Shown here in pieces: positions 219-64,000 of a DNA stretch of 64,000 nucleotides; position 1 is the first letter of the stretch; each line of letters begins with the position of its first letter. Location of the stretch: the NCBI RefSeq assembly GCF_020745735.1, contig NC_083404.1:97897731-97961730 (forward strand), in the 5' to 3' direction. A program made the position numbers and the translations under genes. Source of the stretch: Hemiscyllium ocellatum (lineage: Eukaryota). The notes under the pieces are model-generated. The model saw nothing but the letters and a program-made list of their open reading frames with translations. It did not search any database and was not told where the DNA came from.

Positions 219-2104
219 ATTTTTGTCATCCATGGTTCACAATTCGTGGAGGAACATTGGAAGAGTAGGGCAAGTATTAAATGAGGAATAAAGCGGGCTA
301 AAAGGAGTCATGAAATAGCTTTAGCGAGCAGAATTAAGGAGAATCTCAAAGCATTTCATTCTTATATAAGAAGCAAGAGGGTAACTAGAGAAAGGATTGG
401 TCCACTTAAGGATAACGATAGAAGGCTATGTGTCGAACCTGAGAGAATAGGTGAGATTCTGAATGATTACTTTGCATCAGTGTTCACTGAGGAGAGGAAC
501 ACGATGAATGTTGAGATTAGAGACAGAAGTTTGATTAGTCTGGATCATGTTGACAGAAGTAGGAAAGATGTGTTGGGTATGCTAGAGGTTATTAAGGTGG
601 ACAAATTCCCAGGACCAGATAGGATCTATCCTAGGTTGCTGAGGAAGGCGAGAGAGGAAATAGCTGGGGCCCTGACAGATATTTTTGTGGCATCCTTAAA
701 TACAGGTGAGGTGCCGGAGGACTGGAGAGTTGCTCGAGTTGTCCCTTTGTACAAGAAGGGTAGTAGGGATATTCCAGGTAACTACAGACCAGTGAGCCTG
801 ACGTCAGTTGTGGGAAAGTTTCTGGAGAACGTACTGAGGGATAGGGTCTATTTATATTTAGAAACGAATGGGCTTATCAGTGATGGGCAACATGGTATTG
901 TGCGGGGAGATCGTGCCTTACCAACTTGACAGAGTTCTTCGTGGAAGTGACCAAGTTGTTAGATGAAGGAAGGGCTGTTGATGTTATATACATGGACTTT
1001 AGTAAGGAGTTTGATAAGGTTCCCCATGGTAGACTAATGGAGAAAGTGAAGTCACATGGTGTGCAGGGTGTTCCAGCTAGGTGGATAAAGAACTGGTTGA
1101 GCAACAGGAGATAGAGAGTAGTAGCTGAAGGGAGTTTCTCGAAATGGAGAAAGGTGACCAGTGGTGTTGCACAGGGATCAGTATTGGGGCCAGTGTTTTT
1201 TGTAATGTACACAAATGATCTGGAAGAGGGCACTGTTGGTATGATCAGCAAGTTTGCAGATGACACAAAGATTGGTGGAGTAGCAGAAAGCATAGGGACT
1301 GTCAGAGAATACAGGAGGATATATGTAGACTGGAGAGTTGGGTGGAAACGTGGCAGATGGAGTTCAATCCAGACAAATGTGAGGTGATGCATTTAGGCAA
1401 GTCTAATTCTGGAGCGAATTATACAATGAACGGAAGAGCCTTGGGAAAGGTTGATGGGCAGAGAGATTTGGGAGTGCAGATCCATTGTACCCTGAAGTTT
1501 GCTGCACATTGGACGGGATATTGAGTATAAGAGCTGGCTAGTCATGTTAAAATTGTCCAAGACGTTGGTTTGGCTGCACTTAGAACACTATGTACAGTGC
1601 TGGTCGCCACATTACCAAAAGGATGTGGACGCATTGGAGAGGGTGCAGAGAAGGTTTACGAGGATGTTGCCTGGTATGGAAGGCGTTAGCTATGAAGAGA
1701 GGTTGAGAGGGTTAGGTTTATTTTCATTAGAAAAAAGGAGATTGAGGGGGGACCTGATTGAGGTTTACAAAATCATGAAGGGTTTAGACAGTGTGGATAG
1801 AGACAAGCTTTTTCCCAAGGTGAAGGATTCAATAACGAGAGGTCACGCTTTCAAGGTTGAGAGGTGAAAAGTTTAAGGGGATATACATAGCAAGAACTTC
1901 ACACAGTTTTTGGAACGCGTTGCCAGCAGAGCTGGTAGAGGCAGGTATGGTAGATTCAGTTAAGATTCATCTGGACAGATGCATGAGTAGGTGGGGAGCA
2001 GAGGGATACAGATCGACAGGTTTAGACAGTCCATTTGGATTGGCTCAGGCTTGGAGGGCTGAAGGGCCTGTTCCTGGACTGTAATTTTTTTTCCTCTTTG
2101 TTCT
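219..2104 (+). mobile_element. 5'-truncated CR1/HER1-type LINE, frameshifted ORF2 (RT and 3' UTR)
   Basis: ORF fragments with NYRPVSLTSV, YMDFSKEFDKVPH, QGSVLGP, KFADDTK and LERVQRRFTRM; 3' tail gggctgaagggcctgttcct. 219-245 looks like a short inverted ORF2 piece (reverse complement reads EPWMTK). Confidence 0.95.
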
Positions 2105-2977: not shown

Positions 2978-4210
2978 CCTCCATCCTGGATCTCTCCCCC
3001 CTGCACTGGGCTCGATCTCTCTCCAGCACTGAACTCGATCTCTCTCCCGCACTGAGCTCGAATTCTCTCCCGTACTGAGCTCAATCTCTTCCGCTGCGCT
3101 GGGCTCAATCTCTCCCCCTGTGCTGGGCGCAATCTCTCCCCCTGCGCTGGGCTCGATCTCTCCCTCCGCGCTGGGCTTAATCTCTCTCCTTGCACTGGGC
3201 TCGATCTCTCCCCCTGCGCTGGGCTCAATCTCTACCCCTGCGCTGGGCTCGATCTCTCCCTCTGCGCTGGGCTCAATCTCTCTCCTTGCACTGGGCTCGA
3301 TCTCTACCCCTGCACTGAGCTCGATCTCTCTCCCTGCGCTGGGCTTGATCTCTCCCTCTGCGCTGGGCTCAATCTCTCTCCCTGTGCTGGGCTCAATCTC
3401 TCCCCCTGCACTGGGCTCAATCTCTCCCCCTGCACTGGGCTCAATCTCTCCCCCTGTGCTGGGCTCAATCTCTCCCCCTGCGCTGGGCTCAATCTCTCCC
3501 CCTGTGTTGGGCTCAATCTCTACCCCTGCACTGAGCTCTATCTCTCTCCTTGCACTGAGCCCGATCTCTCCCCCTATACTGAGCCTGATCTCTCTTCCTG
3601 CGCTGGGCCCAGTTGTTCTCGCTGCGCTGCGCCCGATCTCTCCCCCTGCACTGGGCTCGATCTCTCCCTCCTGCGCTGGACTCGATCTTTTTCCCCTGCA
3701 CTGGGCTCGATCTCTCTCCCTGCGCTGGGCTCGATCTCTCCCCCTGCATTGAGCCCAATCTTTCCCCTTGCACTGGGCTCGATCTTTTTCCCCTGCGCTG
3801 GGCTCAATCTCTCCCCCTGCGCTGCGCTCGCTCTCTCCCTGCGTTTAGCTCTATCTCTCTCCCTGCGCTGGGTTCGATCTCTCCCCTGTGCTGAGTTTGA
3901 ACTCTCTCCTTGTGCTGGCTTCAATCTCTCTCCCTGTGCTGTTCAATCTCTCCCCTGTGCTGACTTCGATCTCTCCCCCTGTGCTAAGTTTGATTTCTCT
4001 CCCTGTGCTGACTTCGATCTCTCTCCCTGTCTTGAGTTTGATCTCCCCCCCTGTGCTGAGTTGATCTCTCCCCCTGTGCTGACTTTGATCTCTTTCCCTA
4101 TGCTGGCATTGATCTCTCCCCTTGTGCTGACTTGTTCCCTCTCCCTGTGCTGGCTTTGATCTCTCCCTCTAGGCTGAGTTTAATCCCGCCCCCAGTGCTG
4201 GGCTCAATCA
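2978..4210. repeat. Minisatellite, 24-bp unit (CTGCGCTGGGCTCGATCTCTCCCC), roughly 50 copies
   Basis: The unit is directly visible and generates the repetitive ORFs (ALGSISPP / AQGERLSP). Confidence 0.97.
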
Positions 4211-8616: not shown

Positions 8617-10654
8617 ATGCTTTCTTGTAACAGAGAAATGTTCCTCTAGATTTTTCCTACAAGTAAATATTGAGAAGCCATTGTCTTCAATCCAAATATA
8701 AATTATGACCTCTAGTCACCAACTAATGCATGTTAACATTAAATGTAACTGTAGATGGTTATCTGAGAGATACCAGGCTCACTGATCATAGTTAAGAAAC
8801 TGTAATCTAGATGTACTTCTCTCTTCATTCTAAATTAGCTCCGCCCCCACTGTGTTATTTATGCCCTATGTTAATTAACTCTATGACATCACAAGGTTAC
8901 TCCATAACCCTAAAGCACTTATATCACATAAATGCAAGTTTTAATATGATTGTATTCTTGAAAGCTGAACTTCCCCTTACTGTTCTTGTGTTTTATGCTG
9001 ATGCATAACAAAAATGGGAATCACTAATTCTATTACAGACACTAGAAATTCAGAATTGTAGCTGGTTGTCAATGCAATTAGCTCATTTGCTAGAATGTTG
9101 TTGAACACCCTGGTCAGATACTGAGAGTTAGGGAATATATCAAAACTGTATGCTACCATTTAACATTAATTGATATGGCCACCACAACTTCATTATTGTT
9201 TATAATCTATGGTCTTCTCCAAAACAAAGGCAGTTATTAGAACTGTGATCTGCCGTGAAGGCAATTTAGCACATCACTCTCCAGAACAGTTGTTCCATTA
9301 TCTCCTTACCTAATGTGGATGCCGAAGCAACATGATGCATTGTACCTCAGTTATTCCATTTTGAAATAAATACACATCTCAAATGGACATTTCAAACAGT
9401 TTAAAAAAAAACTTTTTGTGTCAATAATTTGGCATTCCAGCGAGTTAACCAGTAGGAAGTGACATTATGCACAACAAGAAGAATGCTTAATAGCATTCAC
9501 ATCACATTTCTCTGCCTGCAATATTGGAGGAAGCATAAACTACACAGACATTAAATTCAACAGATTCATTCCTGCAGTAAAACAACAGATGGGAAAAGTA
9601 CTGGGAAGAATATTACCGAAACCACCCCCTACTTTCCCTCCTGAGGAGGCTGGAATGAGGCGAGGGAACAGAAAATAAAATTAAATCAGATCAGCACTCT
9701 GACCAAGGACTAGGCTTTACGCTACCTTGCTGGTTTAAGGTGGTGGCACATACAATGCACCCAACTGATGGCTATTTACATGTCTTAACCCCCTTTCCCA
9801 AGCTATTTTACTAGTGGGGTTAAGGACAGCTAGTCTGGTTGCTGTGCAGGTTAGTGTTGGTAGAGAAGGCAGAATCTGCTTAGGGGGTCGGCAAAGTCCA
9901 ATTGAAGGCAACCCCCTGAAAGGTTCATATCCCCTTTGATACATCCCTGTCACACCCCTCACGTACCCAGGACTTGCCTTCAGCCTGGTCTCCAAAAGCC
10001 ACTTCTTTGGCTGTGTCTCAGATTGGCAGGGCCTAGTGAGGAGTGACAGGAAAAGCAGGATCTCAGTGGCAAGAGGGTAAAGGGAAAAGGATGACTATTG
10101 GTGGGGTGTTCATTACCAGTCCTACTGACACCAACCTGCACAGTGAAACTGCTAAGCTTCCAACATGGGATGGGGAAAATTGCTGTGTGGCATAAGGCCC
10201 CTAAATGACTTCAATAGGCCAAAGGCTGATTGCTTAAAACCTTGAATATCCCACAAAGATTTTGCCAGTGCGATGTTATTGTTATTTTGGTATGACCTTT
10301 CTAAAGTGAGAATGGTTCACAATTTTAGCTGTATAGAAAATCAACATTTTTTTGAAAAGTTCAGAAGGTAATTTTGAGGAATGAAATCAAAACAGCATTG
10401 ACATGCAGTCAGGTGATTTTAGCTCCATGGCCAGTAAGATACTTCAGAAGATAATTGTGAGGGCATTTGCTGACTTGTGGTTTACAACCTAGAATGACAT
10501 GGTCTCATGTAGACTAAAGGAGTTAATAATAGTAGAGGTGCTTTGAGTAGAAGTCTGCAGGCCATCAAGACAGGGGAGAAATCCTTGGAAGCTTAAAAGG
10601 TAATGGGAAGACAATCCCAAGAGCAGTCCATATTGAAAGGCAGCAAACCAGGAT

Positions 10655-11265
10655 AATAATCAGGGTTGGTCTGACAAGAGGCAAATATAATTTATATCAC
10701 ACAAGTATCAGTCAATTATTGCCCTTGAGATTCAATGGCATCACCATCACTGAATCTCCCAAAATTAACATTCAGGGGTTTCCTTTAACCAGGAACTGAA
10801 CTGGACTCAGCATGTGAATGCAATGGCTACAAGGACAGATCAGAGGTTAGAAATACTTCAACAAGTAATTCGCCTCCTGATACCTCAAAGCCTGTCCACC
10901 ATCTAATGGGCACAAGTCAAGAATTTGATGGAATACTTTTCACGTTTCTGGAAGACTGTAGCTCCAACAACACACAAGAAGCTTGACACAATCCAAGACA
11001 GAGCGCCCACTTGATTGGTACCACATCCACAAACATTCTTTCCCTCTATAATCGATGCTCAGTAGCAGCAGTGTGCATCATCTATAGATTTATTGAAGAA
11101 GTTCACCAAGGATCCTTCAACAGAACCTTCCAAACTGATGACTGTTATGTTCTAGTCCAAAAATGCCAGCAGATACATCAGAACACCACCATGTGCAAGT
11201 TCTTTTGCAAGCCATTCACTACCCTGACTTAGAAACATTTCTCCATTCCTTCAGTGTCACTGTAG
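10655..11265 (+). mobile_element. LINE-A 3' fragment
   Basis: ttcaatggcatcaccatcactgaatctccc...gaactgaactggactcagcat matches 47600-47700; the later part matches the reverse complement of 61800-62240. Confidence 0.85.
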
Positions 11266-12250: not shown

Positions 12251-13660
12251 GAACATAGAACATAGAAAAGTACAGCACAGAACAGGCCCTTCGGCCTGTG
12301 ATGTTGTGAAGAGGATTAATCTTAATGTAAAATAAAATAGCCTTACCTACACACCCCTCAATTCACTGCTGTCCATGTGCATGTCCAGTAGTCGCTTAAA
12401 TGTCCCTAATGATTCTGCTTTCACCACCATTGCTGGTGGTGAGCCATGCATTCACAACTCTCTGCATAAAGAACCGAGCTCTGACATCTCCTCTATACCT
12501 TCCTCCTAATATTTTAAAACTATGACCCCTCATCCCAATCAATCCTGCACTGGGGAAAAGTCTCCGGCTAATGATTCTATCCATGCCTCTCATTACCTTG
12601 TATACCTCAATCAGGTCACCTCTTCCTCCTTCTCTCCAGAGAGAAAAATCCAAGCTTAGTCAATCTCTCTTCGTAAGACAAGCCCTCCAGTCCAGGCAGC
12701 ATCCTGGTAAACCTTCTTTGCACCCTCTCCAAAACTTCTGTATCTTTCCTGTAATAGGCCAACCAGAACTGGACACAGTATTCCAAGTGTGGTCTCACCA
12801 GGGACTTGTAGAGCTGTAGCAAAACCTCGCAGCTCTTAAACCTGATCCCCTGTTAATGAAAACCAAAATACCATATGCTTTCTTAACAACTCTATTCACC
12901 TTGGTGGCAATTTTGAGGGATCTATGTTCTTGAACACCAAGATCCCTCTGTTTCCACCACACTGCCAAGAATCCTGTCTTTAATCCTATATTCAGCATTC
13001 AAGTTCGACCTTCCATCACTTTGCATTTAACCAGGTTGAACTCCAACTGCCATTTCTCAGCCCAGCTCTGCATCCTGTTTATGTCACACTGCAGCCTGCA
13101 ATAGCCCTCAATTCTATCAATGGCACCTCCAACCTTTGTGTCGTCTGCAAATTTACTAACCCACCCCTCAATCTCCTCATCCAAGTCATTTATAAAAACT
13201 ACAAAGAGCAGAGGCCCAAGAACAGAGCCCTGTGGGACACCACTCAATACTGACCTCCAGGCAGAATACTTTCCATCTACAACCACTCCCTGCTTTCTGT
13301 CAGCCAACCAATTCTGAAGCCAGATAGCCAAATCTCCCTGCATCCCATACCTCCTGAGTTTATAAATGAACCTACCATGGGGAACCTTATCAAATGCCTT
13401 GCTGAAGTCCATATACACCATATCTACTGGTCGAACTTCATCGACTTATCTTGCCACCTCCTCGAAGAATTCAATAAGATTATTTAGGCATGACCTGCCC
13501 TTCATAAAGCCATGCTGACTGCCTTTAATCACGCTATTCTTTTCCAAATAGTCATAAATCCTATCCCTCAGAATTCTTTCCAAAACCTTGCTGACCACAG
13601 ACTTAAGACTGATTGGCCTGTAATTGCCAGGGCTTTCCCTATTACCTTTCTTTTCAAGAG
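12251..13660 (-). mobile_element. 5'-truncated CR1 LINE
   Basis: Minus-strand ORFs with YMDFSKAFDKVPH, GVPQGSVLGP, KFADDTK and VRPHLEYCVQFW; (catagaa)n tail. Confidence 0.95.
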
Positions 13661-26520: not shown

Positions 26521-27815
26521 TCACCTGTAATGTGACATGAACCCAAGGTCCCGGTTGAGGCCCTCCCTATGGGTACCGAACTTAGCTATCAGCCTCTGCT
26601 CGGCCACTTTCCTCTGCTGCCTGTCCCAGAGTCCACCTTGGAGGATGGTCACCTGAAGGTCCGAGGCTGAATGTCCAGGACCACTGAAGTGTTCCCCAAC
26701 TGGGAGGGAACCCTCCTGTCTGTTGATTGTTGTGCGGTTCCCATTCATCCGTTGTCATAGCCTTTGCTTGGTTTCCCCAATGTACCATGCCTCCGGGCAT
26801 CCTAGCCTGCAACATATAAGATAGACAATGTTGGCTGAGTCACATGAGTACCTGCCATGTACAAGGTGGGAGGTGTTCCCACGTGTAATAGTGGTATCTA
26901 TGTCCACAATCTGACACATCTTGCAACGTCCACCATGACATGGTTATATGGAGTTGTCATGAGAGCTGGACAGTTTGCTACGAACAATGATCTGTTTGAG
27001 GATTGGCGATTGTTTAAAGGCAAGTAGTGGAGGTGTAGGGAAGGTCTCGGTGAGGTACTCATCCTCATTGATAATGTGTTGCAGGTCATGAAGAACATGG
27101 CATAATTTTTCAGCCCCTGGGAAGTACTGAACAACGAAGGGTACCCTGTCAGTTGCAGCACGTGTCTATCTCCTGAGGAGGTCATTACGGTTCCTTGCCG
27201 TGGCACGTCGGAACTGGCGGTCGATGAGTTGAGCATTGTACTCCATTCTTGTGAGGGCATCCTTGAGTACTTCCAGGTGTCCGTCACGTTCCTCCTCATC
27301 TGAGCAGATCTGGTGTATGCGTAGGGCTTGTCCACAGGGAATGGCTGTTTTAATATGTTTTGGGTGGAAGCTGGAGAAGTGTAGCATTGTGAGGTTGTCT
27401 GTGGGTTTGCGGTAGAGTGTGGTGCTGAGGTGTCCGTCCTTGATGGAGACGCACGTGTCCAAGAATGAGACAGACAGTCAAGAGTAGTCCATGGTGAGTT
27501 TGATGGTGGGATGAAACTTGTTGATGTCACTGTGTAGTTTTATCAGTGACTCCTCACCATGGGTCCAGAGGAAGAAAATGTCATCAATGTCCCTGGTGTA
27601 CAATGTTGGTTGGAGATCCTGCATAGAGAAGAAATTTTGTTCGAACCTGTGCATAAAAATGTTGGCATATTGGGGTGCAAATTTTGTCCCCATGGCTGTT
27701 CCGTGTGTCTGGATGAAGAATTGGTTGTCAAAGGTGAAGACATTATGATCGAGGATAAAGTGGATGAGTTGTAGGATAGTGTTTGGAGATTGGCAGTTGT
27801 TGGCGTTGAGTACTG
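26521..27815 (-). pseudogene. PLE RT / GIY-YIG ORF, frameshifted
   Basis: ORFs 27478-27828, 27166-27462 and 26521-26748 are successive pieces of one protein. Confidence 0.92.
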
Positions 27816-29009
27816 GCGTTGAAATCAATTTTTCAATGTATAATTTCAGTTACATCACACTGCAAATTTTTGCTATAAATTCTGTATTACTATCAAGCCC
27901 TCCACAATCGCCTGATGAAGGAGCGTCGCTCTAAAAGCTAATGTGCTTCCAATTAAACCTGTTGGACTATAACCTGGTGTTGTGTGATTTTTAACTTTGC
28001 AATTACTTTGATAGCATAGTACATGAAAAGCATTTGTAGATTGCTATTAACATGTATATTAATGTGAAAGCACAAAGTGTGTGAAATTCAGATCGGTTGT
28101 TCCTGTTTTGGGGGCCTATAAATGGTGTTAGAGCTGCAAAATGGCACTTATGGCAACAAACACACTTTTGGGATAAATCATGCCAGGTACAAAGGTGAAG
28201 GTGTTAGCATTCTCGCAATGCATGTCTGGTCGAGGTATGCAGAACAGGCAATTCAAGATGTCAATCAGCTTGCAATGCTGGTGTGATGAAAGCAGTGCTT
28301 TTGGAGCTCAACGCTTTAGCTAATGTTCTCTTTGAACCTTGTACAGCTGAACACGTGTTCAGCAGTAAGAAGGAACCACCCTTCCCCCACCCCTAGTACT
28401 ATTTAAAGAGATCGTAACAGCTTACAGGTTAGTCGATTTCTTCTGGCAGTCACTACTCTTCTACAAGTGTTTGGTGATTTTTGTGGGTTGTTTGAAGTTG
28501 CTGAACTCTACAGGGAATAGTAAGGCAGATGCTGAAAGATTCTTTTGCTGATTTCAAAGCTTCTGAGCAAAACAGTTGCTTCGGTGATGGATGCACTAAT
28601 AATCATTCCTTACGGAATATGCCTTGACTTAGGGAATAAGCAAAGACACCAAGCAGGAGGAAGAGAGCAAGGATTCTCTGGAGGAAACCATCTAATTCCA
28701 GGGTGGTATTCGATGAGTAATTCTTCTACCTGCACCCCTTGTGTGAGGTTGTTTGGAGACGGTCCTTTGTGCACTGTTGCCTTTTGATTACAGTGGATTG
28801 TTATAGTCATCGGACCATGTTGGAGGCCAATCATTTCAATTCCAGGGAAGCATTGTTACTTAGGTTAATGCCATAGGCAAACCATCCACAGCTTCTTTTA
28901 ATAGTCTTCCCACTGACATAAGGTCAGAAGTGGGGATATGAACTGAAGATTGCAGAGGGTTAGTATTATTCTCAACACTCCAGATGCTGAAGCAGTCTGG
29001 GTTAATGAG

Positions 29010-29815
29010 CAGCATGATTTAGGCAACATTCAAGAATGGCTAATAATCAACAAGTGACATGCTCATCACAGATGTGTCAAGCAATGACCATCTCCAACCA
29101 GAGAGAGAGGATCTAGCTATCTTTCTTTGCTACTTACTAGCATTACCATTACTGAATTCCACTCTCCATCACCCACCATCAACATCTTAAGGATTATCAA
29201 TAAACGGCAAATGAACTGGAACAACAATGGCTAAAAGCTATATTAAAAACTATGGCTATAACAACAGGTCAGAGGTGAGCGTTCTCAGTTCCTTGGCTTC
29301 TGACCCTGCAAAGTCTGTTTGCTATCCACAAACCCTAACTCAGGAGGGCAATGGAATACTCACCACTTTCTTGCATGAATGCAGCTCTAACAATTCAAGA
29401 AGCTTGACACTGTCCAAGACAAAGTAGCCTAGATGATTGGCACCCCGTTCACTCTTGCAAATCTCCTTCCCTCCTTTTATTATCTATAAAATGCATAGCA
29501 ACATTTTGCGATGACTCTTTTGAGAACACATTCCAAATCTGTGCTCTATCTCCTGGAAAGGCAGATAAATGGAAACACCACTAGCAAAATTCCCTCCAAG
29601 ACAGACACTTGATTTGGAACTCTACCATTGTTTTATCACTACCTTTGGGTGAAAATCCAAGAGCTCTTTCTCTTACAGTATTGTGCCTATGCCTATAACA
29701 CATGGTCTGCAGCAGCAGGTGGCCCATCATCACCTCCTAAGAAGAATTTAGGGATTAAAATAAATGCTGGCCCAGTCAGCAATACTCACATCACAAAAAC
29801 CAATAATGAAGAAAA
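29010..29815 (+). mobile_element. LINE-A 3' fragment
   Basis: gcaatgaccatctccaac...; ends taaatgctggcccagtcagcaatactcacatc, the family's 3' tail. Confidence 0.8.
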
Positions 29816-33354: not shown

Positions 33355-34160
33355 ACATGTTTCAAAAGAGTTAGGGTATAAGAGCAGAGACATCTCACTG
33401 CAACTGTACAAGTTGCTGGTGAGACCTTGTCTGGAGTTCTGTGAGCAGTTTCGATCCCCTTATCTAAGAAAAGATATTGTTTCATTGGAGGCAGTTCAAA
33501 GAATGTTCATTAAGATGATCTCTGATATGGAAGGATTGTCTTATGAGCAAAGGTTGGAACTCTACTCACTAGAATTTAGAAGAATGAGGGGTGATCTCAT
33601 TGAAACATAAAGAAGTCTTAAAGGTCTTGACAAGGTAAATGCTGAGGATATTATGGGAAGGCTAGGCCAGATGGCATATTCTCAGAATAAAATGGTTGCT
33701 GAAAATGTGTTGCTGGAAAAGCACAGTAGGTCAGGCAGCATCCAAGGAACAGGAGATTCGACGTTTCAGGCATAAGCCCATTCCTGAAGAAGGGCTTATG
33801 CCCGAAATGTCAAATCTCTTGTTCCTTGGATGCTGCCTGACCTGCTGCACTTTTCCAGCAACACATTTTCAGTTCTGATCTCCAGCATCTGCAGACCTCA
33901 CTTTCTGCTAGAATAAAATGGTGTCAATTTAAGACTGAGATGAGGAGGAATTTCTGATTTCAGAGTACTGTGAGTCTTTTAACCTCCTTTCCCGAAATAA
34001 TAATGTGTTATGTAAGGCTGATGTTGATAGATTCTTAATCAGTAGGAGAATCAAGGGTTACGAGGAAAATGCAGGGATTTTGGATCAGCCAAGATCCTAA
34101 TAAGTAGCAGAGCAGGATGGAGTGGGTTCGCAGCCTACTCCTGTTCCTGTTGCTTATGGT
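33355..34160 (+). mobile_element. CR1 3' fragment
   Basis: LYKLLVRPCLEFCEQF...RRMRGDLIET and CR1 3' UTR. Confidence 0.88.
33697..33909. mobile_element. Short foldback PLE-terminus element with hammerhead motif, nested in CR1
   Basis: Inverted arms pivot at ~33780; cctgaagaagggcttatgcccgaaatgtc; exact 13-bp TSD AGAATAAAATGGT at 33684-33696 and 33910-33922. Confidence 0.92.
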
Positions 34161-43438: not shown

Positions 43439-44912
43439 CTCTTCCCAGAAGTGACAAGGAACACTGCATTTCAAAACAGATCAAGCCTGAGTCTAGCCTC
43501 AATGGACAGAAGGGAATATGGTCACTCCGCTGATTTCAAGTCCATTGCATCTGTTTTTAGCAATAAGCAAATTAAGAGTAGCTCAAAAAACATAACGGAT
43601 ATGACAATGTTTCAACTTATAAGCTAGCATTCAAAATAATAATAAACCCAATTTCTAATCTGTTATTGTCAATGTAATCATTACTTTAAAAGTGATTACT
43701 TATTGTTTTTTGGGAAAAGAAATTTCTTCTTTATCAACATGTATTTTGAACCAAATTTTCTTAGCATACTTTGGATATGGAAATCTGTCTTTTTGATCAG
43801 ATGCTTTCTGTACTATCTTGAAATATCACACACATACACACTTCTATCATTATTATTCACCTAATGCAAGTGCTCTTGTGAGCTATTAAAAAGAGGAGTT
43901 CTGAGTGGAAAAAAAATGCTTTAGAAAACTTGTGGGCATCCTCAAAAATGAAAATATATTAAGCTGTCCTTTCCAGCTGTTGCTATCTTATCTTGTCATT
44001 CAGTTTACACAACACAGAATGGTGGAGACTGAAATGGCAGTCAGAGTGTTGTCCATTTTTCATTATGATTCTCAACAGCAACATATTAAAGGCAATCTAA
44101 ACTGTTATCCAGAACTGCATTAGTTTGCTGAACTGAGGTCTGAGCGAGGCTTTATTGCATGTATCTTACAAAATGTGAGGCATAGACACTTTATTAAACA
44201 CAAAGTATTTAACATTGAAATGTTTGATATTCCTGCAACGTACAATGCCTAAATGTTAAAGGGGATGTTAGACTCTACTGGAGTCGTTACTGGATTAGTA
44301 ATCGAGAGATCCAGGTACTCTTGTAGGGACCTGGGGTTAAATATGGTGGAATTTGAATCCAGCAATGTCTTGCAGTGAAGGAAACTGCTGTCTTTTCCCA
44401 GTTCAGCCTACATGTGACTCAGACCCCGAGCAATGTGGTTGACCTTTAACTGCCCTCTGAAATAGCCACAGAAAGATTAAAAGGAATGAAGCTTGATGGA
44501 CCTGCTGGTATTGACTAAGGCACTGGAAACATTAAGAATGAGCAGTCAAATCTGCAGAATCCTCCTTACTGACAACTGGAGGCTAGTGCGAAAATTGGAG
44601 AGCTGTCTCACAGACTGGTCAAGCAACAGCCTGACATAGTCATACTCATGGAATCATACCTTACAGACTCTGTCCCAGACACCACCATCACCATCTCTGG
44701 ATATGTCCTGTCCCATTGGCCAAACAGACCTATCAGAGATGGCAACAGAGATGTATACAGTCGAGAAACGGTTGTATTGGATGTTTTTTGGACTCCATGA
44801 AGTCTCACAGCATCAAATCAAACATGGGCAAGGAAGCCTCCTGCTGATCACCATGTACTGAGTCCTCCTCAGCTGATATATCAGTTCTACTCCATATTGG
44901 ACAAAACATGGA

Positions 44913-46164
44913 AAACCCACTTGGAAGGGCATGGGTTAATTCGTGACAGTCAGCATGGCTTTGTCAGGGGAGGTCATCATGCCATATAAATTTGTTAGAG
45001 GTTTTTGAACACGTGATCAAGTGTGTGGATAATGTAGTTTGAATGGATTTGCATTTAGTTGATGTAGCTTATATGGATTTTAGCAAAGCTTTTGACGAAG
45101 TCCCACATGGGAGACTAATTGAGAACATTAAAGCACATGGTACTGAGGGAAATTTGATATATTGGCTGAGTAATAGGACAGAAAGGATAATAGTCAAAGG
45201 CTGTTTGAGTAACTGGAGACTGGTTTCCAGTAGAGTACCACAAACATCTGTACTGGGACCCTGATTGTTTGTTATATACATAAATGATATGGTTGAAAAT
45301 GTGGGGGGAATTGTTAACCAAATTTGCAGAAGACACCAAGAAGATTACAGGAATAGATGGGGTTGTCAGATGGGCAGACCAGTGGCAGATGATATTTAAG
45401 TGGGAGGTGATGCACTTTGGAAGAAGAAAAGAGATGAGGGAGTATTTAATGAATGGCAGGACACTGGATAGCTTAGAGGAATAGAGGGATTTTTGGGGTA
45501 ATTATTCATAATTCCCTGAAGTCTGCAGAGCAGATGAATAGGATATTTCAGAAGGCTTATGGGGAATTTGCATTTGTCAGTTGTGGTACAGACAATAAAA
45601 ATAAGGAGATAATGTTGGAGTTATACAGACCACAGCTGGAGTATGTGTACAGTTCTGGTGTCTCACTCCTGGGAGTATGTGATAGGACTGAAGGGTGTGC
45701 AGAGGAGGTTCACCAGGATGTTGCCTGGGATGGAGCGATAAGCAGAAACTAGATAGGCTTGGATTGTTTTCTTTGGAATGAGAGGAATGACATGATACAT
45801 GATTGAAGTGTAAAAGGTTATGAGGAGTATGGATAATGTGAATATAGCAGTTATTCCCCTTGGTTGAGGGGTCAATCACGAGGCTGCATAGTTTTAGGGT
45901 AAGAGGCAGGACACTCAGAGAGGATTTGAGGAAGAAAAAACTTTTCACTCAGTACATGGTGAGAATCTGAAATGCACTGCCTGGGAAGGTAGTGAAGGCT
46001 AGAAACCTTACAATCTTTGCAAAATATTTGGATGAGCATTTCAAATATCAAAACATTCAAGGAAATGGGACAAATGCAGGAAATTGGGATTTGTGTAAAT
46101 AAGTGCAGACTTAATGGGCCGAAGGGTTTTTTCAGCGCTATTTGACTCTGTGAAATATGAATCT
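44913..46164 (+). mobile_element. CR1 nested in LINE-A
   Basis: YMDFSKAFDEVPH, KFAEDTK; ATGGA duplicated at 44908-44912 and 46165-46169. Confidence 0.9.
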
Positions 46165-47731
46165 ATGGAGGAAGCACTGAGGGTAGCAAAGGTGCAAAAT
46201 GTTCTCTGGGAGGGAGATTTCATTGTCCAGCAGCAAGAGTGACTCAGCAGCAGAACTATTGACTGAGTCCAAAAGGAAATTGCTGCTAGTTTGAGTCTCT
46301 GGCAAGTGGTGATGGAGCAAACAAAAGGGAGAAACATACTTGAGCCCCTCCTGATCAATCTGCTTACTGCTCATGGCACAGTCCTTGTGGAGACAAACAT
46401 TTTCACACTGAGCATGCTCTCCATGATATGAACTATCACTGAGCTAACTGAGAAAGGACTCAAACAGGGCAAGCAATTCGAAGCTGGAAGTGCTTTGAAA
46501 TGGTATTAGCAGCAAAGTTATACAGTTATACAATCTGTAACCTCATAGCCCAGCATATTCCCAACTCAGTCATTCCCATCAAACTGGAAGATCAGCCCTG
46601 GTCCAATGAAGAGTGCAGGGGGGTGGGCCAAAAGCAGTGCTGGGCATATCTAAAAAGGAGATGTCAACTTGGTGAAGCTACCAGGACTACCTGTGTGCCA
46701 AATAGCATAAGCAGCAAGAGATAAAAAGAGCTAAGCGACTCTAGAAACAACAGATCAGATATAAGCTCTGCAGTCCTGCCACATCCAGTTTTGAGTAGGC
46801 GCCGCAAATACTCCCATCCTCAATAATTTGGAAGCCCAACGCATCAAAAGATAAGGTTGAAAATTTCACAATAATCTTCAGTCAGAAGTGCCAAATAAAT
46901 GATTCATCCCAGCCTCCTCTAGAGGTCTCCAGTATCACAGATATCAGTCTGAAGATTTACTCCGTTTGATACTAATATGGAGGCACTGGATGCTGCAAAG
47001 ACTATGGACCGTAATAACATTCTCACAATAGTACTGAAGACTTGTGCTCCAGAGCTTGCTACTTCCCTAGCCAAGCTGTTCCAGTACAGTTGCGACACTG
47101 GTATCTACCCGACAATGTAGAAAATTGCCCAGACATGTCCTCTACACAAGAAAACCGGACAATTACCTTCCTATCAGTCTACTCTAGTTCATCAGTAAAG
47201 TGATGGAAAATGTCATCAACAGTGCTATCAAGAGCATTTGTTAGCAATAACCTGCTCACTATTGCTCAGTTTGTGGTTATTGGAGGTCAGTCATCTCAGC
47301 TCCAGCATATTTCTGTAGGACTTCCTCAGTGTAGTGTCCAAGGTCTAACCAGCATCAGCTGCTTCATCAATGAGTCTTCCTGCATCATATGGTCAGAAGT
47401 GCAAATATTCACTAATGATTGTACAATGTTCAGCACCATTCATGACTCTTTGGAGACTGGAGACATCCATGCTCAAATGCAACAACATCTGGACAATAGC
47501 CAGGCTTGGGCTGAAAAGTGGCAAGTAACATTTGCATTACTCAAGTGCCAGGCAATGACCATCTCCAATAAAAGAGAACCTAACCACCACCCATTGACAT
47601 CCAATGGCATAACTATCACTGAAATCCCCACTATCAACATCTTGGGGATTAGTATTGACCAGAAACTGAACTGGACTCAACATATGAATAAGTGGCTACA
47701 GGGGCAGGTCAGACACGACAAATCCTGCAGC

Positions 47732-48500
47732 AAATCTTAGCAGGACTTATACACTTCATGGTAAGGTCTTTGGAAGTTTACTGAACAAAGAGACCTTGGA
47801 GTGCAGGTTCATAGCTCCTTGAAAGTGAAGTCGCAGGTAGATAGTATAGCGAAGAAGGCGTTTGGTATACTTTCCTTTATTGGTCAGAGTATTGATTACA
47901 GGAATTGGGAGGTCATGTTGTAGCTGTACAGGACACTGGTTAGGCTACTGTTAGAGTATTGCGTGCAATTCTGGTCTCCTTCCTATCGGAAAGATATTGT
48001 GAAACTTGAAAGGGTTCAGAAAATCCTTACAAGGATGTTGCCAGGGTTGGAGGATTTGAGCTACAGGGAGAGGCTGAACAGGCTGGGGCTGTTTTCCCTG
48101 GAGTGTTGGAAGCTGAGGGGTGACCTTATAGAGGTTTATAAAATCATTAGGGGCATGGATGGGGTGAATAGACAAAGTCTTCTCCCTGGGGTGGAGGAGT
48201 CCAGAACTAGAGGGCATAGGTTTACGGTGAGAGGGGAAAGATATAAAAGAGACTTAAGGGGCAACTTTTTCATGCAGAGGATGGTACATGTATGGAATGA
48301 ACTGCCAGAGGAAGTGATGGAGGCTGGTATGATTGCAACATTTAAAAGACATCTGGATGGATATATGAATAGGAAGGGTTGGAGGGATATGGGCCAGGTG
48401 CTAGCAGGTGGGACTAGATTGGGTTGGGATATCTGGTCGGCACGGACTAGTTGGACTGAAGGGTCTGTTTCCATGCTGTACATTTCTTTGACTCTATGAC
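47732..48500 (+). mobile_element. Young HER1/CR1 3' fragment nested in LINE-A
   Basis: ORF 47963-48499 (QFWSPSYRKD...LRGDLIEVYKI); tail tttgactctatgac. Confidence 0.95.
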
Positions 48501-48720
48501 TTGAGGTAACTCACCTTCTCATTTGCATCTTACACTCATGATCTTGACTTGGAATTATATCACTATTCTTTTAATGTCACTGAGCCAAAATCCTGAAAAT
48601 CCCTCCCTCATGGCTCTGAGTATGTTCCTCCAACCAATAGGCTGTAGCAATTTGAAAAGGTGGCTCACCACTACCCTCTATGGGATACCACAGGTGGACA
48701 GGAAACATTCCCCAGGCAGT

Positions 48721-49012
48721 ATAGATTCATAGATTTGTAGAAAATAGGTGCTAGAGTAGGCCATTTGGCCCTTTGAGCCTGCACCACCATTCAAAACGAT
48801 CATGGCTAATCATGCAATTTCAGCATCCCACTTCCACTTTCTCTCCATACCCCTTGATCCTATCAGCTGCAGGGACCACGTCGAGCTCCCTCTTGAATGT
48901 AACTAAAGAACTGGCTCCAACAGCTTCCTGTGACAGACAATTCCACAGGTTCACAACTCTCTGAGTGAAGAAATTCATCCTCATCTCAGTCCTGAATGGC
49001 TTTCTCCTTATT
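48721..49012 (-). mobile_element. CR1 3' fragment nested in the LINE-A tail
   Basis: taggtgctagagtaggccatttggccctttgagcctgc...gtgaagaaattcatcctcatctcagtcct. Confidence 0.88.
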
Positions 49013-49250
49013 TACACATACCCCATGATGAAATGAAAATAAGAGATATGTCAATAGATGATATTCGAGTAAAGCTTACTCAATTTTCAGTCTGATTAGA
49101 GTAAGATTTTCTTTCATGCCTTCATGGAGGTGAGCTCACTTGGCAATGAGAGCACTTATTGTCCACCTCCATTGCTTTTGGAGTTCAACGCCACCCTGCT
49201 GGAGCGAACTTTAGAGAAATGTCATGGGTAGTCAACTACTTTGTAATCTT

Positions 49251-50805: not shown

Positions 50806-51213
50806 TCATGAACTCAAGGTCCTGGTTGAGGCAATCCCTATGGGTACTTAGCTGTCAGCCTCTGCTCAGCCACGTTTTGCTGCTGCCTGTCCCAAAGTCC
50901 ACCTTGGAAGATGGTCACCTGAAGGTCCGAGGTCCGAGGTCCGAGGTCAACTGGGACCTTGGGTTCATGTCACACTGCAGGTGATCCCATTACACTATAC
51001 AGACACTCCTCCAGACACACATACACACACACACATGCATGTACACACATATACACAAAGGCACTCCTACACACACACACACACACACGCACACATGCAT
51101 TCCCACAGTTGCATATGCACCCTCACACAGACCTAGACCCCTTTACACTCAAACATACATATACACTCTCTCTCACAGGCACTCACAAACACCCCCCCCA
51201 CCCAACATCCCCC

Positions 51214-51244
<31 letters not shown>

Positions 51245-51774
51245 ATACACACAAACCCACGTGCACACAGATGCATATATGTTTGTGGGGTGAATTTGTA
51301 CTTGCAGAGTTACATTGTACTTTGCTCCAAAACTGCATGAATCCATGTAAGATTCTGTTAATTCATTTTTTAGGTTAGAGTCTAAACATTATGGCACAGA
51401 CAGCAGCACATAGGGGGCTAACACCTTCAACACATTATCTGGGCTGACACCAATTGTTAAGGTTCTCCTGAGAATGTAATTTTAAAAGGAAGTTTTGTGA
51501 TTTACATATGAAAGAAGTGAAACTAACATGGTCATTCTAACAGATGAGACTTAACAAACAATCAATGTATTTTTCAATGTAGAATTTCAGTTACATCACA
51601 CTGTAAACTTTTGCTATAAATTCTGTGTCTTACAATTGTGTACTCTATAACCGCCTGATGAAGGAGCAGCGCTCCGAAAGCTAGTGTTTCCAAATAAACC
51701 TAGTGGACAATAACCTGGTGTTGTATGATTTTTAACTTTGTATACCCCACTCCAACACTGGCATCTCCAAATCA
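50806..51774 (+). mobile_element. PLE 3' end with inverted 5' segment (50806-~50930)
   Basis: Minus GIY-YIG piece, (GGTCCGA)3 junction, then plus-strand stop region, CA/C-rich UTR and full terminus ending ggcatctccaaatc. Confidence 0.9.
51649..51689 (+). ncRNA. Minimal hammerhead ribozyme motif
   Basis: AACCGC-CUGAUGA-A-GGAGC-AGC-GCUCC-GAAA-GCUA-GUGUUU. Confidence 0.8.
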
Positions 51775-60004: not shown

Positions 60005-60296
60005 TTCTTCATTCACAGGACACTGGTATCCCTGGCCGGACCAGCATTTATTGCCTGAGGATTTAACCACATTCCTGTGGGTCTGAAGACCAGATAAGGC
60101 TGGCAATTCCTTTCACTAAAGGACATTAATGAAACAGAAGGATGTTTCTCAACAATGATCTCATGGTCATCATGAGACTCCAGATTTTCATTGAATTCAT
60201 TAAAACTTCAACAGCAGAAAGTGAATACAAGTCCCCATCACATTATATGGGTCACAGGATTAATAGTCCAGAGGCAATACTAGGAAGCCATTACCC
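60005..60296 (-). mobile_element. SINE made of the LINE-A head plus the LINE-A 3' tail
   Basis: Reverse complement: ctggactattaatcc...ggggac...aatgtcctttag...cagacccacaggaatgtggtt joined to ggcaataaatgctgg...tgaatgaa. Confidence 0.75.
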
Positions 60297-61664
60297 ATTT
60301 ATAGCTCTGGCTTTGGATTGAGGTGCCACAGATAAGTGCCAACTGTTGCATTGTTATCTTGATATCACCCCGTCCTCTCCTAGATTGAGCTGTGTGGGTT
60401 TGAAAGTGAATGCAAGCAGGTCTCATAGCTCTTGGATCATCATTTCAATATCCAATGAAACTAAAGAGCTGCTGCTCTCAGCCCTGCATCTTAGAGATTG
60501 TTTTGCTGCTTGATAGATGGTTGTTGATTTCTTGTTAGAAATTATGTCACATATCTTGCACTTTATTTAAACGTAAGCTGCACTACCAGCGTTCACCACA
60601 ACTTGAGGATAACCAATGAAGCTCTACATTGCTAGGGATTGGGGTTGGGGGTTACTGGCAACAATATTGTGAAGGCAAAGGGGTATTGCATTGTTGTGAT
60701 AGTGGGATTGGTGGGCAATTCTGAGAGTAGGCTAGGGTGCAGACTTCTGAGTGCAGGAAGAGAATACACACATGCCAATTTTATACAGCAATTTGATATC
60801 CAATGAGAATTTGGAATAATCAAAATCACTCAACCCCCATCTTGGACAAACAATTATAAAAATGTAATTTCAGTCTAATTATGATGGACAACATAGCCAC
60901 TGTCAAAACCAAAGAATAGACATTGTGATTGACGTACAATTTACTTCCACTGGGGTATCTTTGCTGTACCAATGCTCATGTTATCACTCACAAGTTTGAA
61001 TCATTGAGCTTTATAAACAATGGATTATGCGATTCTAAATAGGCTTCATTCTTTTAACTTGGAAAACAAAAGACATTTCAAGCTTTTCTCAACTGTAAAT
61101 ATTGTGCTGCACAACATGTTCCTTGTAGTGCAGCACCAATTATCTGAGTTCAGAAAATAGATGAAAAAAACATGAGCACATGACAGTGATTTCCTAAGGG
61201 TATGATATCTTAAAACTCGTCTTAATTTACCTATTTCTTTGTTGAAGCATTGATCTATTTGCTTCTCTTTATTAGTTACAAATGATTGAAGATATTGGGT
61301 CAGGAAAGAAGGATTCTATGATTCCACTGTTGGCACTTTGGTAGAGATGAGAATTGCAGGTGGTTAATAGTTAAATAGCAAAGGAATGTTTAAACTAGGA
61401 AATACAGACAACTGGGAAAATATAAGTACTGAAGTTAAGTTAAAGGTGAATGATAAATGAATGAAAATATAAATCGTGCATGGAGTAAAAGGTAAACCAC
61501 ACTTTAATAATAACCAATGAACATGAGCATAAGAAGTTATGTCATGTTGACATCAAATCATACAGAACTGAATCATGAGTGTGTACACTCAAAGTCTTCT
61601 CTTAATATCCCTTATTCGTGTTTATATTCAATGAAACTTGTTTATGTTCACTCAACTGCTTTTA

Positions 61665-62385
61665 ATTCATTCATGGAATATGAGCATTGTTGGCTGGCCA
61701 GCATTTATTGTCCATCCCGAGTTGCCCTTGAGAAGTTGGTGATGTATTGCCTTCTTAAATCTCTGCAGTCCATTTGGTGTAGGTGACGCACAATGCCATT
61801 CATTCGGGAATTTCAGGATTTTGATCCAGCAACAGTGAAGGAATGGCGATATCTTTACAAGTCTGCATGGTGATTGGCTTGGAGGGGAACTTGCAGCTGA
61901 TAGTGTTTCCATGTATCTGCTGCCCTTGTCCTTCTAGGTGGATGTGTAGATTTGGAATGTGCTGTCGAGGGATCATTACAGAAATTCTGCAGTGCATTTG
62001 TAGGTAGTACACTTTGTTACTATGTAGTGTCAATGAAATGGGGAGTAGATTCTTGTGGGTGTGGTGCCAATCAAGTGGGCTACTTTGTCCTGGGTGGTGT
62101 CAAGCTTCTTGATGTTGGAGCTGCACTTACCCAGTCAAATGGGGAGCATACCAACACACTCTGACTCGTGTGGTGGACAGGCTTTTTGGGGAGCCAGGTG
62201 GTGAGTTATTCATTGCAGTATTTCCAGCTTCTGACCTGCTCTTATCATCACTGTATTAATACAGTTGAGCTTCTGGTCAATGGTAACCCCAGGTTATTGA
62301 TACTGGAGTATTCAGTGATGGGTTGGTTGGATTGTCTCTTCTTGGAGATGGCTGTTACTTGGCATTTGTGTGGCATGAATGTTAT
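61665..62385 (-). mobile_element. LINE-A 3' fragment
   Basis: Tail cattcatggaatatgagcattgttggctggccagcatttattg; ORF end GLQRFKKAIHHQLLKG. Confidence 0.85.
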
Positions 62386-63214
62386 TGAAAAATTGCCATG
62401 AATTGCTAACTTCTCTTTTCTTCCTTCTAACCAAATTTAATCCTGTTTTCTATCAATCCCTCTAATTCCATAACACTTAATCTTTAAAAATCTGTTTTAT
62501 TGAACAGTTTCAAAGACTTTCCCAAAGCACACAGAAACCGCATACTTTACATAACCACTGTTCATGATGATTGTTCACTACACAAAAACAACAAACGAGG
62601 TTAGTCAAACTTATCTATACTATGTATAGACTTCATCTTACTATATTTAGAAAGACAAATGGAATACACAAATAAAATACACATGTCACAAGTGCAAAAA
62701 GACTAAAATAAGGTAGGGTGCAGCTTAGACAAGTGAGTTACTGGAAAAGGTGCTATGTCAGAAAGTTTTAAAAATACAAATTTTGCAATGTGAAGAATTT
62801 TGTAATTAACCTGAGTTAGCTGAAAACAATTATTTTACAGGAAGATCTAGAATTCATTGTATAAGCAGACATCTCATTACAAACAGGCTAAAGCAGCAAA
62901 ATAAGTACATTGGGGTGCAGCTTATGGATAAGTGGTAGAACAAATAATAAAAGAGGTGGAGTGGCTATATTAATAAAATAAAGAATAAATGAAGAATATA
63001 TACTGCAGAAATGCAAGAATGTTGTCGATTCACCATTTGAAGCTCCATTAAATGTGAATGTGTTCTGAAAGATTGTAGAGTGGTCAGTATTGTAACCATT
63101 TTTAACAGGCAGATAAAGCTAGATGGTTGAACATCTGTGTTAGGGAATAGTTTTGAGTATCTGTGGATGACATGTATATATGTATATATAGGTTTAAAAG
63201 AAGTAGATAGTAGC

Positions 63215-63619: not shown

Positions 63620-63865
63620 AAAATTCACTCATGGGACATGTGCATTGCTGGCTGGGCCAGCATTTATTGCCCAAACCTAGTCGCCCTTGAGAAGGTGTTG
63701 ATGAGCAATCTTCTTGAACCGCTGCAGTTTATTTGATCTAGGTAGACTTACAATGTTGATAGTTAGGAAATTCCAGGCTTTTGAGCCACTGACAGTGATG
63801 GAATAGCAATAAATTTCCTAGTCAGGACTGTGATTAGCTTGGAGTGGAACTAGCAACTGGCGTTT
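63620..63865 (-). mobile_element. LINE-A 3' tail
   Basis: Matches 61665-61900. Confidence 0.85.
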
Positions 63866-64000
63866 TTTTTTCACACATATTTGCTGCTCCCAGATTACAA
63901 TATAGAGTTGTTTTTAGTAAATAAAAGGAACCTCTCAAAGAATATTGATAAGATTTGAACTGTACATTCACAAGATATTAGAAACTGTATCGTGTGTCAA

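Follow-up and report, generated by a model that had tools for sequence, protein, structure and literature searches.

The DNA analysed here, referred to as the window, is a 64,000-nucleotide stretch of Hemiscyllium ocellatum (contig NC_083404.1, positions 97,897,731 to 97,961,730 of the forward strand), a repeat-rich piece of cartilaginous-fish DNA with 133 N within it. Between 44262 and ~49045 on the plus strand it contains a composite element, copy A, which is probably an ancient, dead, full-length insertion of a cartilaginous-fish long interspersed nuclear element (LINE) that lacks a first open reading frame (ORF1) and has a CR1-like reverse transcriptase (RT) and a 5' untranslated region (UTR) resembling a short interspersed nuclear element (SINE). 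As judged from alignments, this 5' UTR is homologous from its first base to the head and body of a tRNA-type SINE located in the same window at 60005-60312. Because the SINE ends in the 3' tail of the LINE, and the SINE head and body form the front of the LINE, the short and the long element have both ends in common. The element had been pointed out in an earlier reading of the window made from its letters alone, which is called the original prediction below.

Similarity was assessed with BLAST, tblastn, an nhmmer head profile, z-scores of local alignments against shuffled sequences, Pfam, Rfam and ARAGORN. Copy A was mapped with two better-preserved fragments of the LINE family, the ENA contig L001 and the JGI contig L002, the latter from a metagenome sample and evidently host DNA. 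A protein search gave whale-shark gene models as relatives of the window repeats, and these ORF models (the P0001-P0145 series), which are fragmentary protein models without DNA, served as a second mapping aid. Searches with sequence words against proteins returned mainly whale-shark eukprot fragments. The representative protein search gave 21 matches, mostly fragments of 81-298 amino acids; no full-length ORF of the family was among them, and the two longer matches are unrelated proteins. Among contigs of metagenomes, viruses and prokaryote genomes, a search with the endonuclease alignment found no related loci, and the contigs L003 and L004 are RT fragments without heads.

Structure and age of copy A

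Copy A starts at 44262 with GGGG and a tRNA-like head part (44262-44350, plus strand), which was assigned from head alignments and in which neither Rfam nor ARAGORN calls a tRNA. Stretches resembling an A box and a B box lie at ~44269-44282 and ~44334-44345. The SINE-body-like part of the 5' UTR follows at 44351-44465 (plus strand), delimited by alignments and nhmmer and with a z-score of 27.5 against the L002 head; the body is ~100 bp shorter than in L002, in the SINE and in a second head-bearing copy of the window, copy B. Taken together, head and body are covered by the nhmmer head profile at 44255-44472. A spacer of 21 nt, read directly from the sequence (44466-44486), leads to the ATG at 44487, which was placed by homology with whale-shark models starting MKPDG or MKLDG. 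The start of the ORF and the N-terminal half of an apurinic/apyrimidinic (AP)-type endonuclease occupy 44487-44936 (plus strand) and are now broken by stops and frameshifts. Here L001:26-454 aligns to 44517-44936 with 74% identity (BLAST), and the models P0015, P0005 and P0145 support the assignment (tblastn).

The ORF is interrupted by a nested, 5'-truncated CR1-like LINE (44937-46165, plus strand), which is delimited by the homology to L001 ending at 44936 and restarting at 46166; its left edge falls within 44910-44936. It contains an RVT_1 match at 45043-45261 and CR1-type C-terminal motifs in its reading frames. Copy A resumes at 46166-47738 (plus strand) with the C-terminal half of the endonuclease, a linker and the RT, supported by matches to L001, P0010, P0023 and P0001 and by RVT_1. 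In this part, L001:427-657 matches 46166-46387 (BLAST), and the RT at 47204-47737 is 64% identical to P0001 over 151 amino acids (tblastn), with a weak RVT_1 match of 20.3 bits and an internal deletion of ~200 bp near 47240-47270. A second nested CR1-like fragment, a 3' end at 47739-48500 (plus strand), carries an ORF with CR1-type C-terminal motifs at 47963-48499 and has a read word depth, which is not a copy count, of 10^6 in all runs.

The end of the ORF and the first part of the 3' tail lie at 48501-48725 (plus strand; BLAST, z = 8.4), where 48533-48718 matches a tail copy at 61876-61691 (63%, E=1e-12; BLAST). The tail is then split by a third nested fragment (48726-49016, minus strand), an antisense CR1-like 3' end assigned by eye, which has a high word depth and matches 38084-37974 at 72% with its part 48754-48868. 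The last tail bases (...CCCATGA.TGAA...) were read directly at 49017-49045 (plus strand) by comparison with the tails of two further copies, E and F, and run into an A-rich stretch. With the tail split in this way and its last ~28 bases, a weak match (z 2.4-3.1), beyond the antisense fragment, the end coordinate 49043 of the original prediction is reasonable, and its coordinates for the element are sound overall. The endonuclease of copy A itself is too decayed for Pfam, yet it aligns to L001 at 73-74%. Copy A is a very old, dead and thrice-interrupted insertion, and the content of the locus is ordinary.

CR1-like LINE fragments of the kind nested in copy A were noted at 12999-13421 (minus strand) and at 480-1867, 45043-46150 and 47760-48500 (plus strand). 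In all four runs this CR1-like family has by far the highest word depth, 10^6 versus ~10^4 for the LINE studied here, and it dominates among the repeats of the three species whose runs contain the locus.

Copy A is ~26% diverged from L001. Contigs of the organisms B and C join unique flanking sequence to the copy A head (X9 record 25 and X17 record 17) and are ~5% different, and other contigs span the insertion boundaries of the nested fragments (records 11, 18, 20, 21, 24, 26 and 30). Because the join of flank and head and the edges of the nested insertions are both bridged in the contigs of organisms B and C, the whole composite is older than the split of the three species.

The head-to-ORF junction in other copies

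Copies A and B have a common layout, in which ~200-300 nt of SINE-like head and body are followed by a spacer of 20-45 nt and by the ATG of a single ORF for endonuclease and RT. The short spacer leaves no space for ORF1, in agreement with the original prediction, in which no ORF1 was visible. Copy B lies on the minus strand. Its head, body, spacer and ORF start (2100-2520) were located by alignments with copy A, by nhmmer (2518-2251) and by z-scores, and its endonuclease (1-218), which leaves the window at the edge, by a match of L001:93-144 to 217-166 at 77% and a z-score of 13.1 against L001. Between the two halves lies a CR1-like LINE (219-2099, plus strand) with CR1-type ORFs at 480-929 and 1499-1867. 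BLAST aligns copies A and B over 197 bp (E=1e-6). The z-scores are 9.2 for the heads of A and B, 24.2 for the heads of B and L002, 11.2 for the B spacer against A, and 11.7 for 218-1 against the endonuclease of copy A, so that the claim of the same head-to-endonuclease junction in copy B was borne out.

Outside the window, a single BLAST segment (L002:1350-1771 against 44364-44760, 70% identity) spans the head/ORF boundary, which confirms that the head at 44262-44465 runs unbroken into the ORF, with the conserved endonuclease block ~100 bp on. The order in L002 is head (1208-1470), spacer or UTR, endonuclease to ~1790, a rearranged internal deletion and tail (2061-2127), and the L002 head, the copy A head and the SINE all start at the same GGGG. 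Upstream lies a LINE 3' end in inverted orientation (L002:464-800), and the deleted copy itself includes a piece of the endonuclease that is likewise inverted (L002:1881-2018). The L002 copy is thus rearranged and not a clean deletion derivative.

Among the whale-shark models, the ORFs of P0004, P0006, P0013 and P0145 open from SINE-body sequence into the endonuclease, that of P0013 extending as far back as the tRNA-like part. The shared ATG (MKPDG.../MKLDG...) is the start of P0007, P0011 and P0015, and the remaining ORF fragments are 5'-truncated copies fused to unrelated sequence. An alternative 5' UTR or an ORF1 ahead of the endonuclease, which would have counted against the original prediction, was not seen in any of the copies extending 5' of the ATG (A, B, L002 and the four whale-shark models). 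By alignment, the junction of head and ORF characterises the family, being found in two copies in the window, a foreign contig and four whale-shark ORF models.

Nesting is rife in this DNA, copy A alone having three nested CR1-like fragments, and a SINE lying beside a LINE, or a LINE inserted within a SINE, independently at each locus, would give a composite of similar appearance. However, the same junction, within the resolution of the alignments, is present in A, B, L002 and the four whale-shark ORFs. Since the identical junction recurs, such chance nesting is already refuted and keeps next to no probability, as the original prediction had held for chance adjacency.

The SINE and the 5'-truncated copies

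The SINE copy at 60005-60312 (minus strand), in which head and body are joined to the 3' tail of the LINE family, was delimited by nhmmer (60312-60035) and by the tail motif at 60039-60056. Compared with the heads of A, B and L002, its own head has z-scores of 4.2, 10.2 and 20.4, and over 48 bp its tail has 77% identity to that of the LINE at 63624-63671 (E=2e-5; BLAST). The description of the short element as the head fused to the family 3' tail therefore holds, with its limits now at 60005-60312. A 3' tail in common with the partner LINE, a mark of SINE2 elements, is present. Within the window the head hidden Markov model finds three places only, namely copies A and B and this SINE, and the 18-nt tail motif occurs three times versus 0.02 expected by chance.

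Four further copies of the LINE are 5'-truncated. Fragment C (10652-11262, plus strand) runs from the RT to the C-terminal region and copy D (28897-29810, plus strand) from the RT to the tail, both identified by BLAST and tblastn; copy E (61665-62400, minus strand; BLAST, tblastn and tail motif) runs from the end of the RT to the tail, and copy F (63622-63887, minus strand; BLAST and tail motif) consists of the tail only. Copies C-F are ordinary 5'-truncated LINE insertions with a common 3' end, and none of the four has SINE sequence upstream.

These copies bear on the possibility of a target-specific LINE which inserts at one fixed position of the SINE, so that its copies are preceded by the 5' part of the target. 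Such LINEs, inserting after small-RNA gene sequence, are known from a citation in PMC5786205, and an identical junction would be expected in every copy. Yet copies C-F have no SINE sequence upstream and copy A has no SINE remainder on its 3' side, which disfavours a target-specific LINE. In addition, the 3' part of the SINE is the LINE tail, so that a separate target remainder does not exist. Target-specific insertion is accordingly very unlikely as the origin of the composite.

Relationship to LINE clades

An AP-type endonuclease is recognised in the family by the match of L001:471-686 to PF14529 (41.7 bits, cut-off 27.4), and an RT by the match of P0001 to RVT_1 (79.9 bits). Over 80-140 amino acids, the RT of the family shares 34-40% identity with the CR1-like RTs of the window (tblastn), and this percent identity favours the CR1 group over RTE, as does the PF14529-type endonuclease. 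RTE membership, which a single ORF and a two-ended SINE would fit, was set aside on the 40% RT identity to CR1-like RTs.

The original prediction had taken ORF1 to be usual in CR1-group LINEs. This premise is out of date, as Rex1, Zenon and chondrichthyan L2 elements without ORF1 are described in a 2026 survey (PMC13343379), and the missing ORF1 is therefore ordinary. Like the local LINE, the ORF1-less Rex1, Zenon and L2 clade B elements have a single ORF for endonuclease and RT. Zenon is characterised by the lack of ORF1, with which the local spacer of 20-45 nt agrees; it is known from elasmobranchs, and its tail is poly-A. In copies A, D, E and F the tail terminates in ...CCATGAATGAAT, after which come short A-rich runs, with poly-A and flank blurred by decay. 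The survey of ORF1-less CR1-group LINEs does not mention a SINE-like 5' UTR, unlike what is seen in the local LINE.

tRNA likeness of the head

An A-box-like TAACACAGTGG is found six bases from the 5' end of L002, and a B-box-like GTTCANTTCC ~60 nt further on in the consensus of four heads. The two motifs stand in the tRNA-type order, and the gap between them is longer than in a tRNA. A tRNA was recognised neither by Rfam, at gathering and E-value thresholds, nor by ARAGORN in any head, and ARAGORN found none in the 122-nt four-copy consensus, which covers the head only. Because Rfam and ARAGORN were negative in every copy and in the consensus, the tRNA origin of the head is tentative. Internal TTTT runs, a scan for which had been proposed as a further check, are not depleted: the sense strand has 14 versus 16.2 expected in 6.6 kb of decayed copies, and owing to this decay the count has no power as a test for adaptation to RNA polymerase III (Pol III).

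The negative tRNA searches, in each copy and in the consensus, would agree with a different origin of the short element, as a bipartite non-autonomous LINE similar to RIME/ingi or RTESINE. Its head would then be the RNA polymerase II (Pol II) 5' UTR of the LINE, and the likeness to A and B boxes would be due to chance. LINE deletion derivatives with two ends are well documented (PMC5786205), and L002 shows that internal deletion does occur in copies of this LINE. On the other hand, TAACACAGTGG followed by GTTCANTTCC is the order of a tRNA-type head, albeit with the longer gap, and a cartilaginous-fish SINE with a similar tail, which may or may not be the local one, has been called tRNA-derived (PMC5499810, PMC2746220). 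A bipartite LINE derivative with a chance resemblance to tRNA promoters is quite unlikely on this evidence.

Other features of the window

A minisatellite at 3000-4200 consists of ~45 copies of a 24-bp unit with ~80% matches; its higher-order periods are 72 bp and 96 bp, and spurious long ORFs arise from it on either strand. A different retroelement is represented by two adjoining ORFs at 26898-27828 (minus strand), the upstream one with a weak RVT_1 match of 20.4 bits; this element is unlike both the LINE family studied here and the CR1-like copies. A low-complexity stretch rich in CA and CT at 50959-51378 yields an ORF of H/T/P repeats. A hammerhead ribozyme had been proposed at the pivot of ~200-bp foldback elements (33684-33922); an Rfam scan of the whole window at gathering thresholds found no family and no hammerhead.

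Discussion

Several points weigh against the interpretation of copy A as a full-length LINE with a SINE-like 5' UTR and a CR1-like RT. The copies in the window are all 25-40% decayed. The only DNA copy with the junction outside the window is L002, which is rearranged, and the whale-shark support comes from fragmentary ORF models without DNA. The clade assignment is one by percent identity. To these are added the negative Rfam and ARAGORN results and the undepleted TTTT runs described above, as well as the published drawing of L2-2_CM, an L2-type LINE of the chimaera, in which the homology to its SINE is confined to the tail (PMC5499810). From this tail-only drawing it follows that the chimaera LINE may have no such head, or that its consensus is incomplete at the 5' end.

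By analogy with known CR1/L2-type LINE-SINE pairs, the LINE RT would recognise the shared 3' tail, and both RNAs would therefore be copied. The common front end would give a transcription start to the LINE as well as to the SINE, both of which begin at the same GGGG. As a best guess, the head with its A- and B-box-like motifs might drive Pol III transcription of the short element, and the protein-coding LINE RNA would still require a capped Pol II transcript starting in or near the same region. Two routes to such a pair can be envisaged. In the first, template switching at the 5' end of the LINE would have provided it with a tRNA head, and a later loss of its middle would have given rise to the SINE; in the second, the LINE would have captured the 5' part of a pre-existing SINE. 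The two routes are about evenly balanced. Template switching is a plausible way to gain a tRNA head by analogy with chimeras of L1 with U6 and other small RNAs, which also have the small RNA 5' of the LINE cDNA (bioRxiv 10.1101/2025.02.02.635956). Those chimeras are described there as single dead-end insertions, whereas the local elements form a propagating family with a fixed front. A further-reaching idea is that the conserved body of this SINE lineage, possibly the vertebrate Deu domain, is the 5' UTR of a CR1-group LINE with a tRNA-type internal promoter, an autonomous and protein-coding element which Pol III can transcribe, and that this LINE is the living parent of the 'enigmatic' body of a SINE superfamily. 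This idea is unlikely.

The closest known system is the pair of SacSINE1, a tRNA-type SINE found in chimaera, sharks and skates, and the L2-type LINE L2-2_CM, which have a common tail (Nishihara 2006, as cited; Luchetti 2017, PMC5499810). Like that pair, the local one combines a tRNA-type SINE and a LINE with the same 3' tail, and it probably belongs to the same SINE/LINE lineage; SacSINE1 is 463 bp long. The published homology of the SacSINE1 pair is restricted to the tail, whereas the local LINE also has the SINE head and body as its 5' UTR.

SINEs that contain part of a LINE 5' UTR together with the LINE 3' end are known, namely Bov-tA, CoeSINE4/5, WALLSI2, SINE2_Gav and SINE1-1_EBu, and for such bipartite SINEs an origin by internal deletion has been proposed, in the RTE and Vingi clades only (PMC5786205, PMC7245038). 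Like these SINEs of Kojima, the local SINE joins a 5' portion of its LINE to the LINE 3' end. In contrast to the RTE and Vingi cases, the RT of the local LINE looks like that of the CR1 group. Moreover, in Kojima's model a small-RNA head is added to a deleted, headless LINE derivative, whereas here the full-length copy A and L002 start with the head. A short element made of the two ends of a long one is also found in the ingi/RIME and L1Tc/NARTc pairs of trypanosomes; as these are cited in PMC5786205, they have no tRNA-like head, and they differ from the local pair in clade and host.

Papers on DeuSINEs, MetaSINEs, the bivalve HCD-SINE and the CR1 group compare tails only or leave the 5' UTR undiscussed (PMC4824008, PMC11481361, PMC13343379). 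Phrase searches of the literature found no description of a SINE-headed or tRNA-headed LINE, and sequence words of the local SINE had no match in the literature text searched. The layout may be present in Repbase or Dfam without having been remarked upon.

The source of the conserved middle parts of SINEs is an open question, and the one systematic survey reported LINE 5' parts from RTE and Vingi only, and none for the conserved SINE bodies (PMC5786205). With a CR1-group LINE that begins with an entire SINE front, the number of such clades would rise to three. The LINE/SINE pair would also allow the order of events, gain of the head or deletion first, to be tested in chimaera, sharks, skates and coelacanth. 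It raises the question whether, and with which polymerase, a 3-kb coding retrotransposon can be transcribed from a tRNA-type head.

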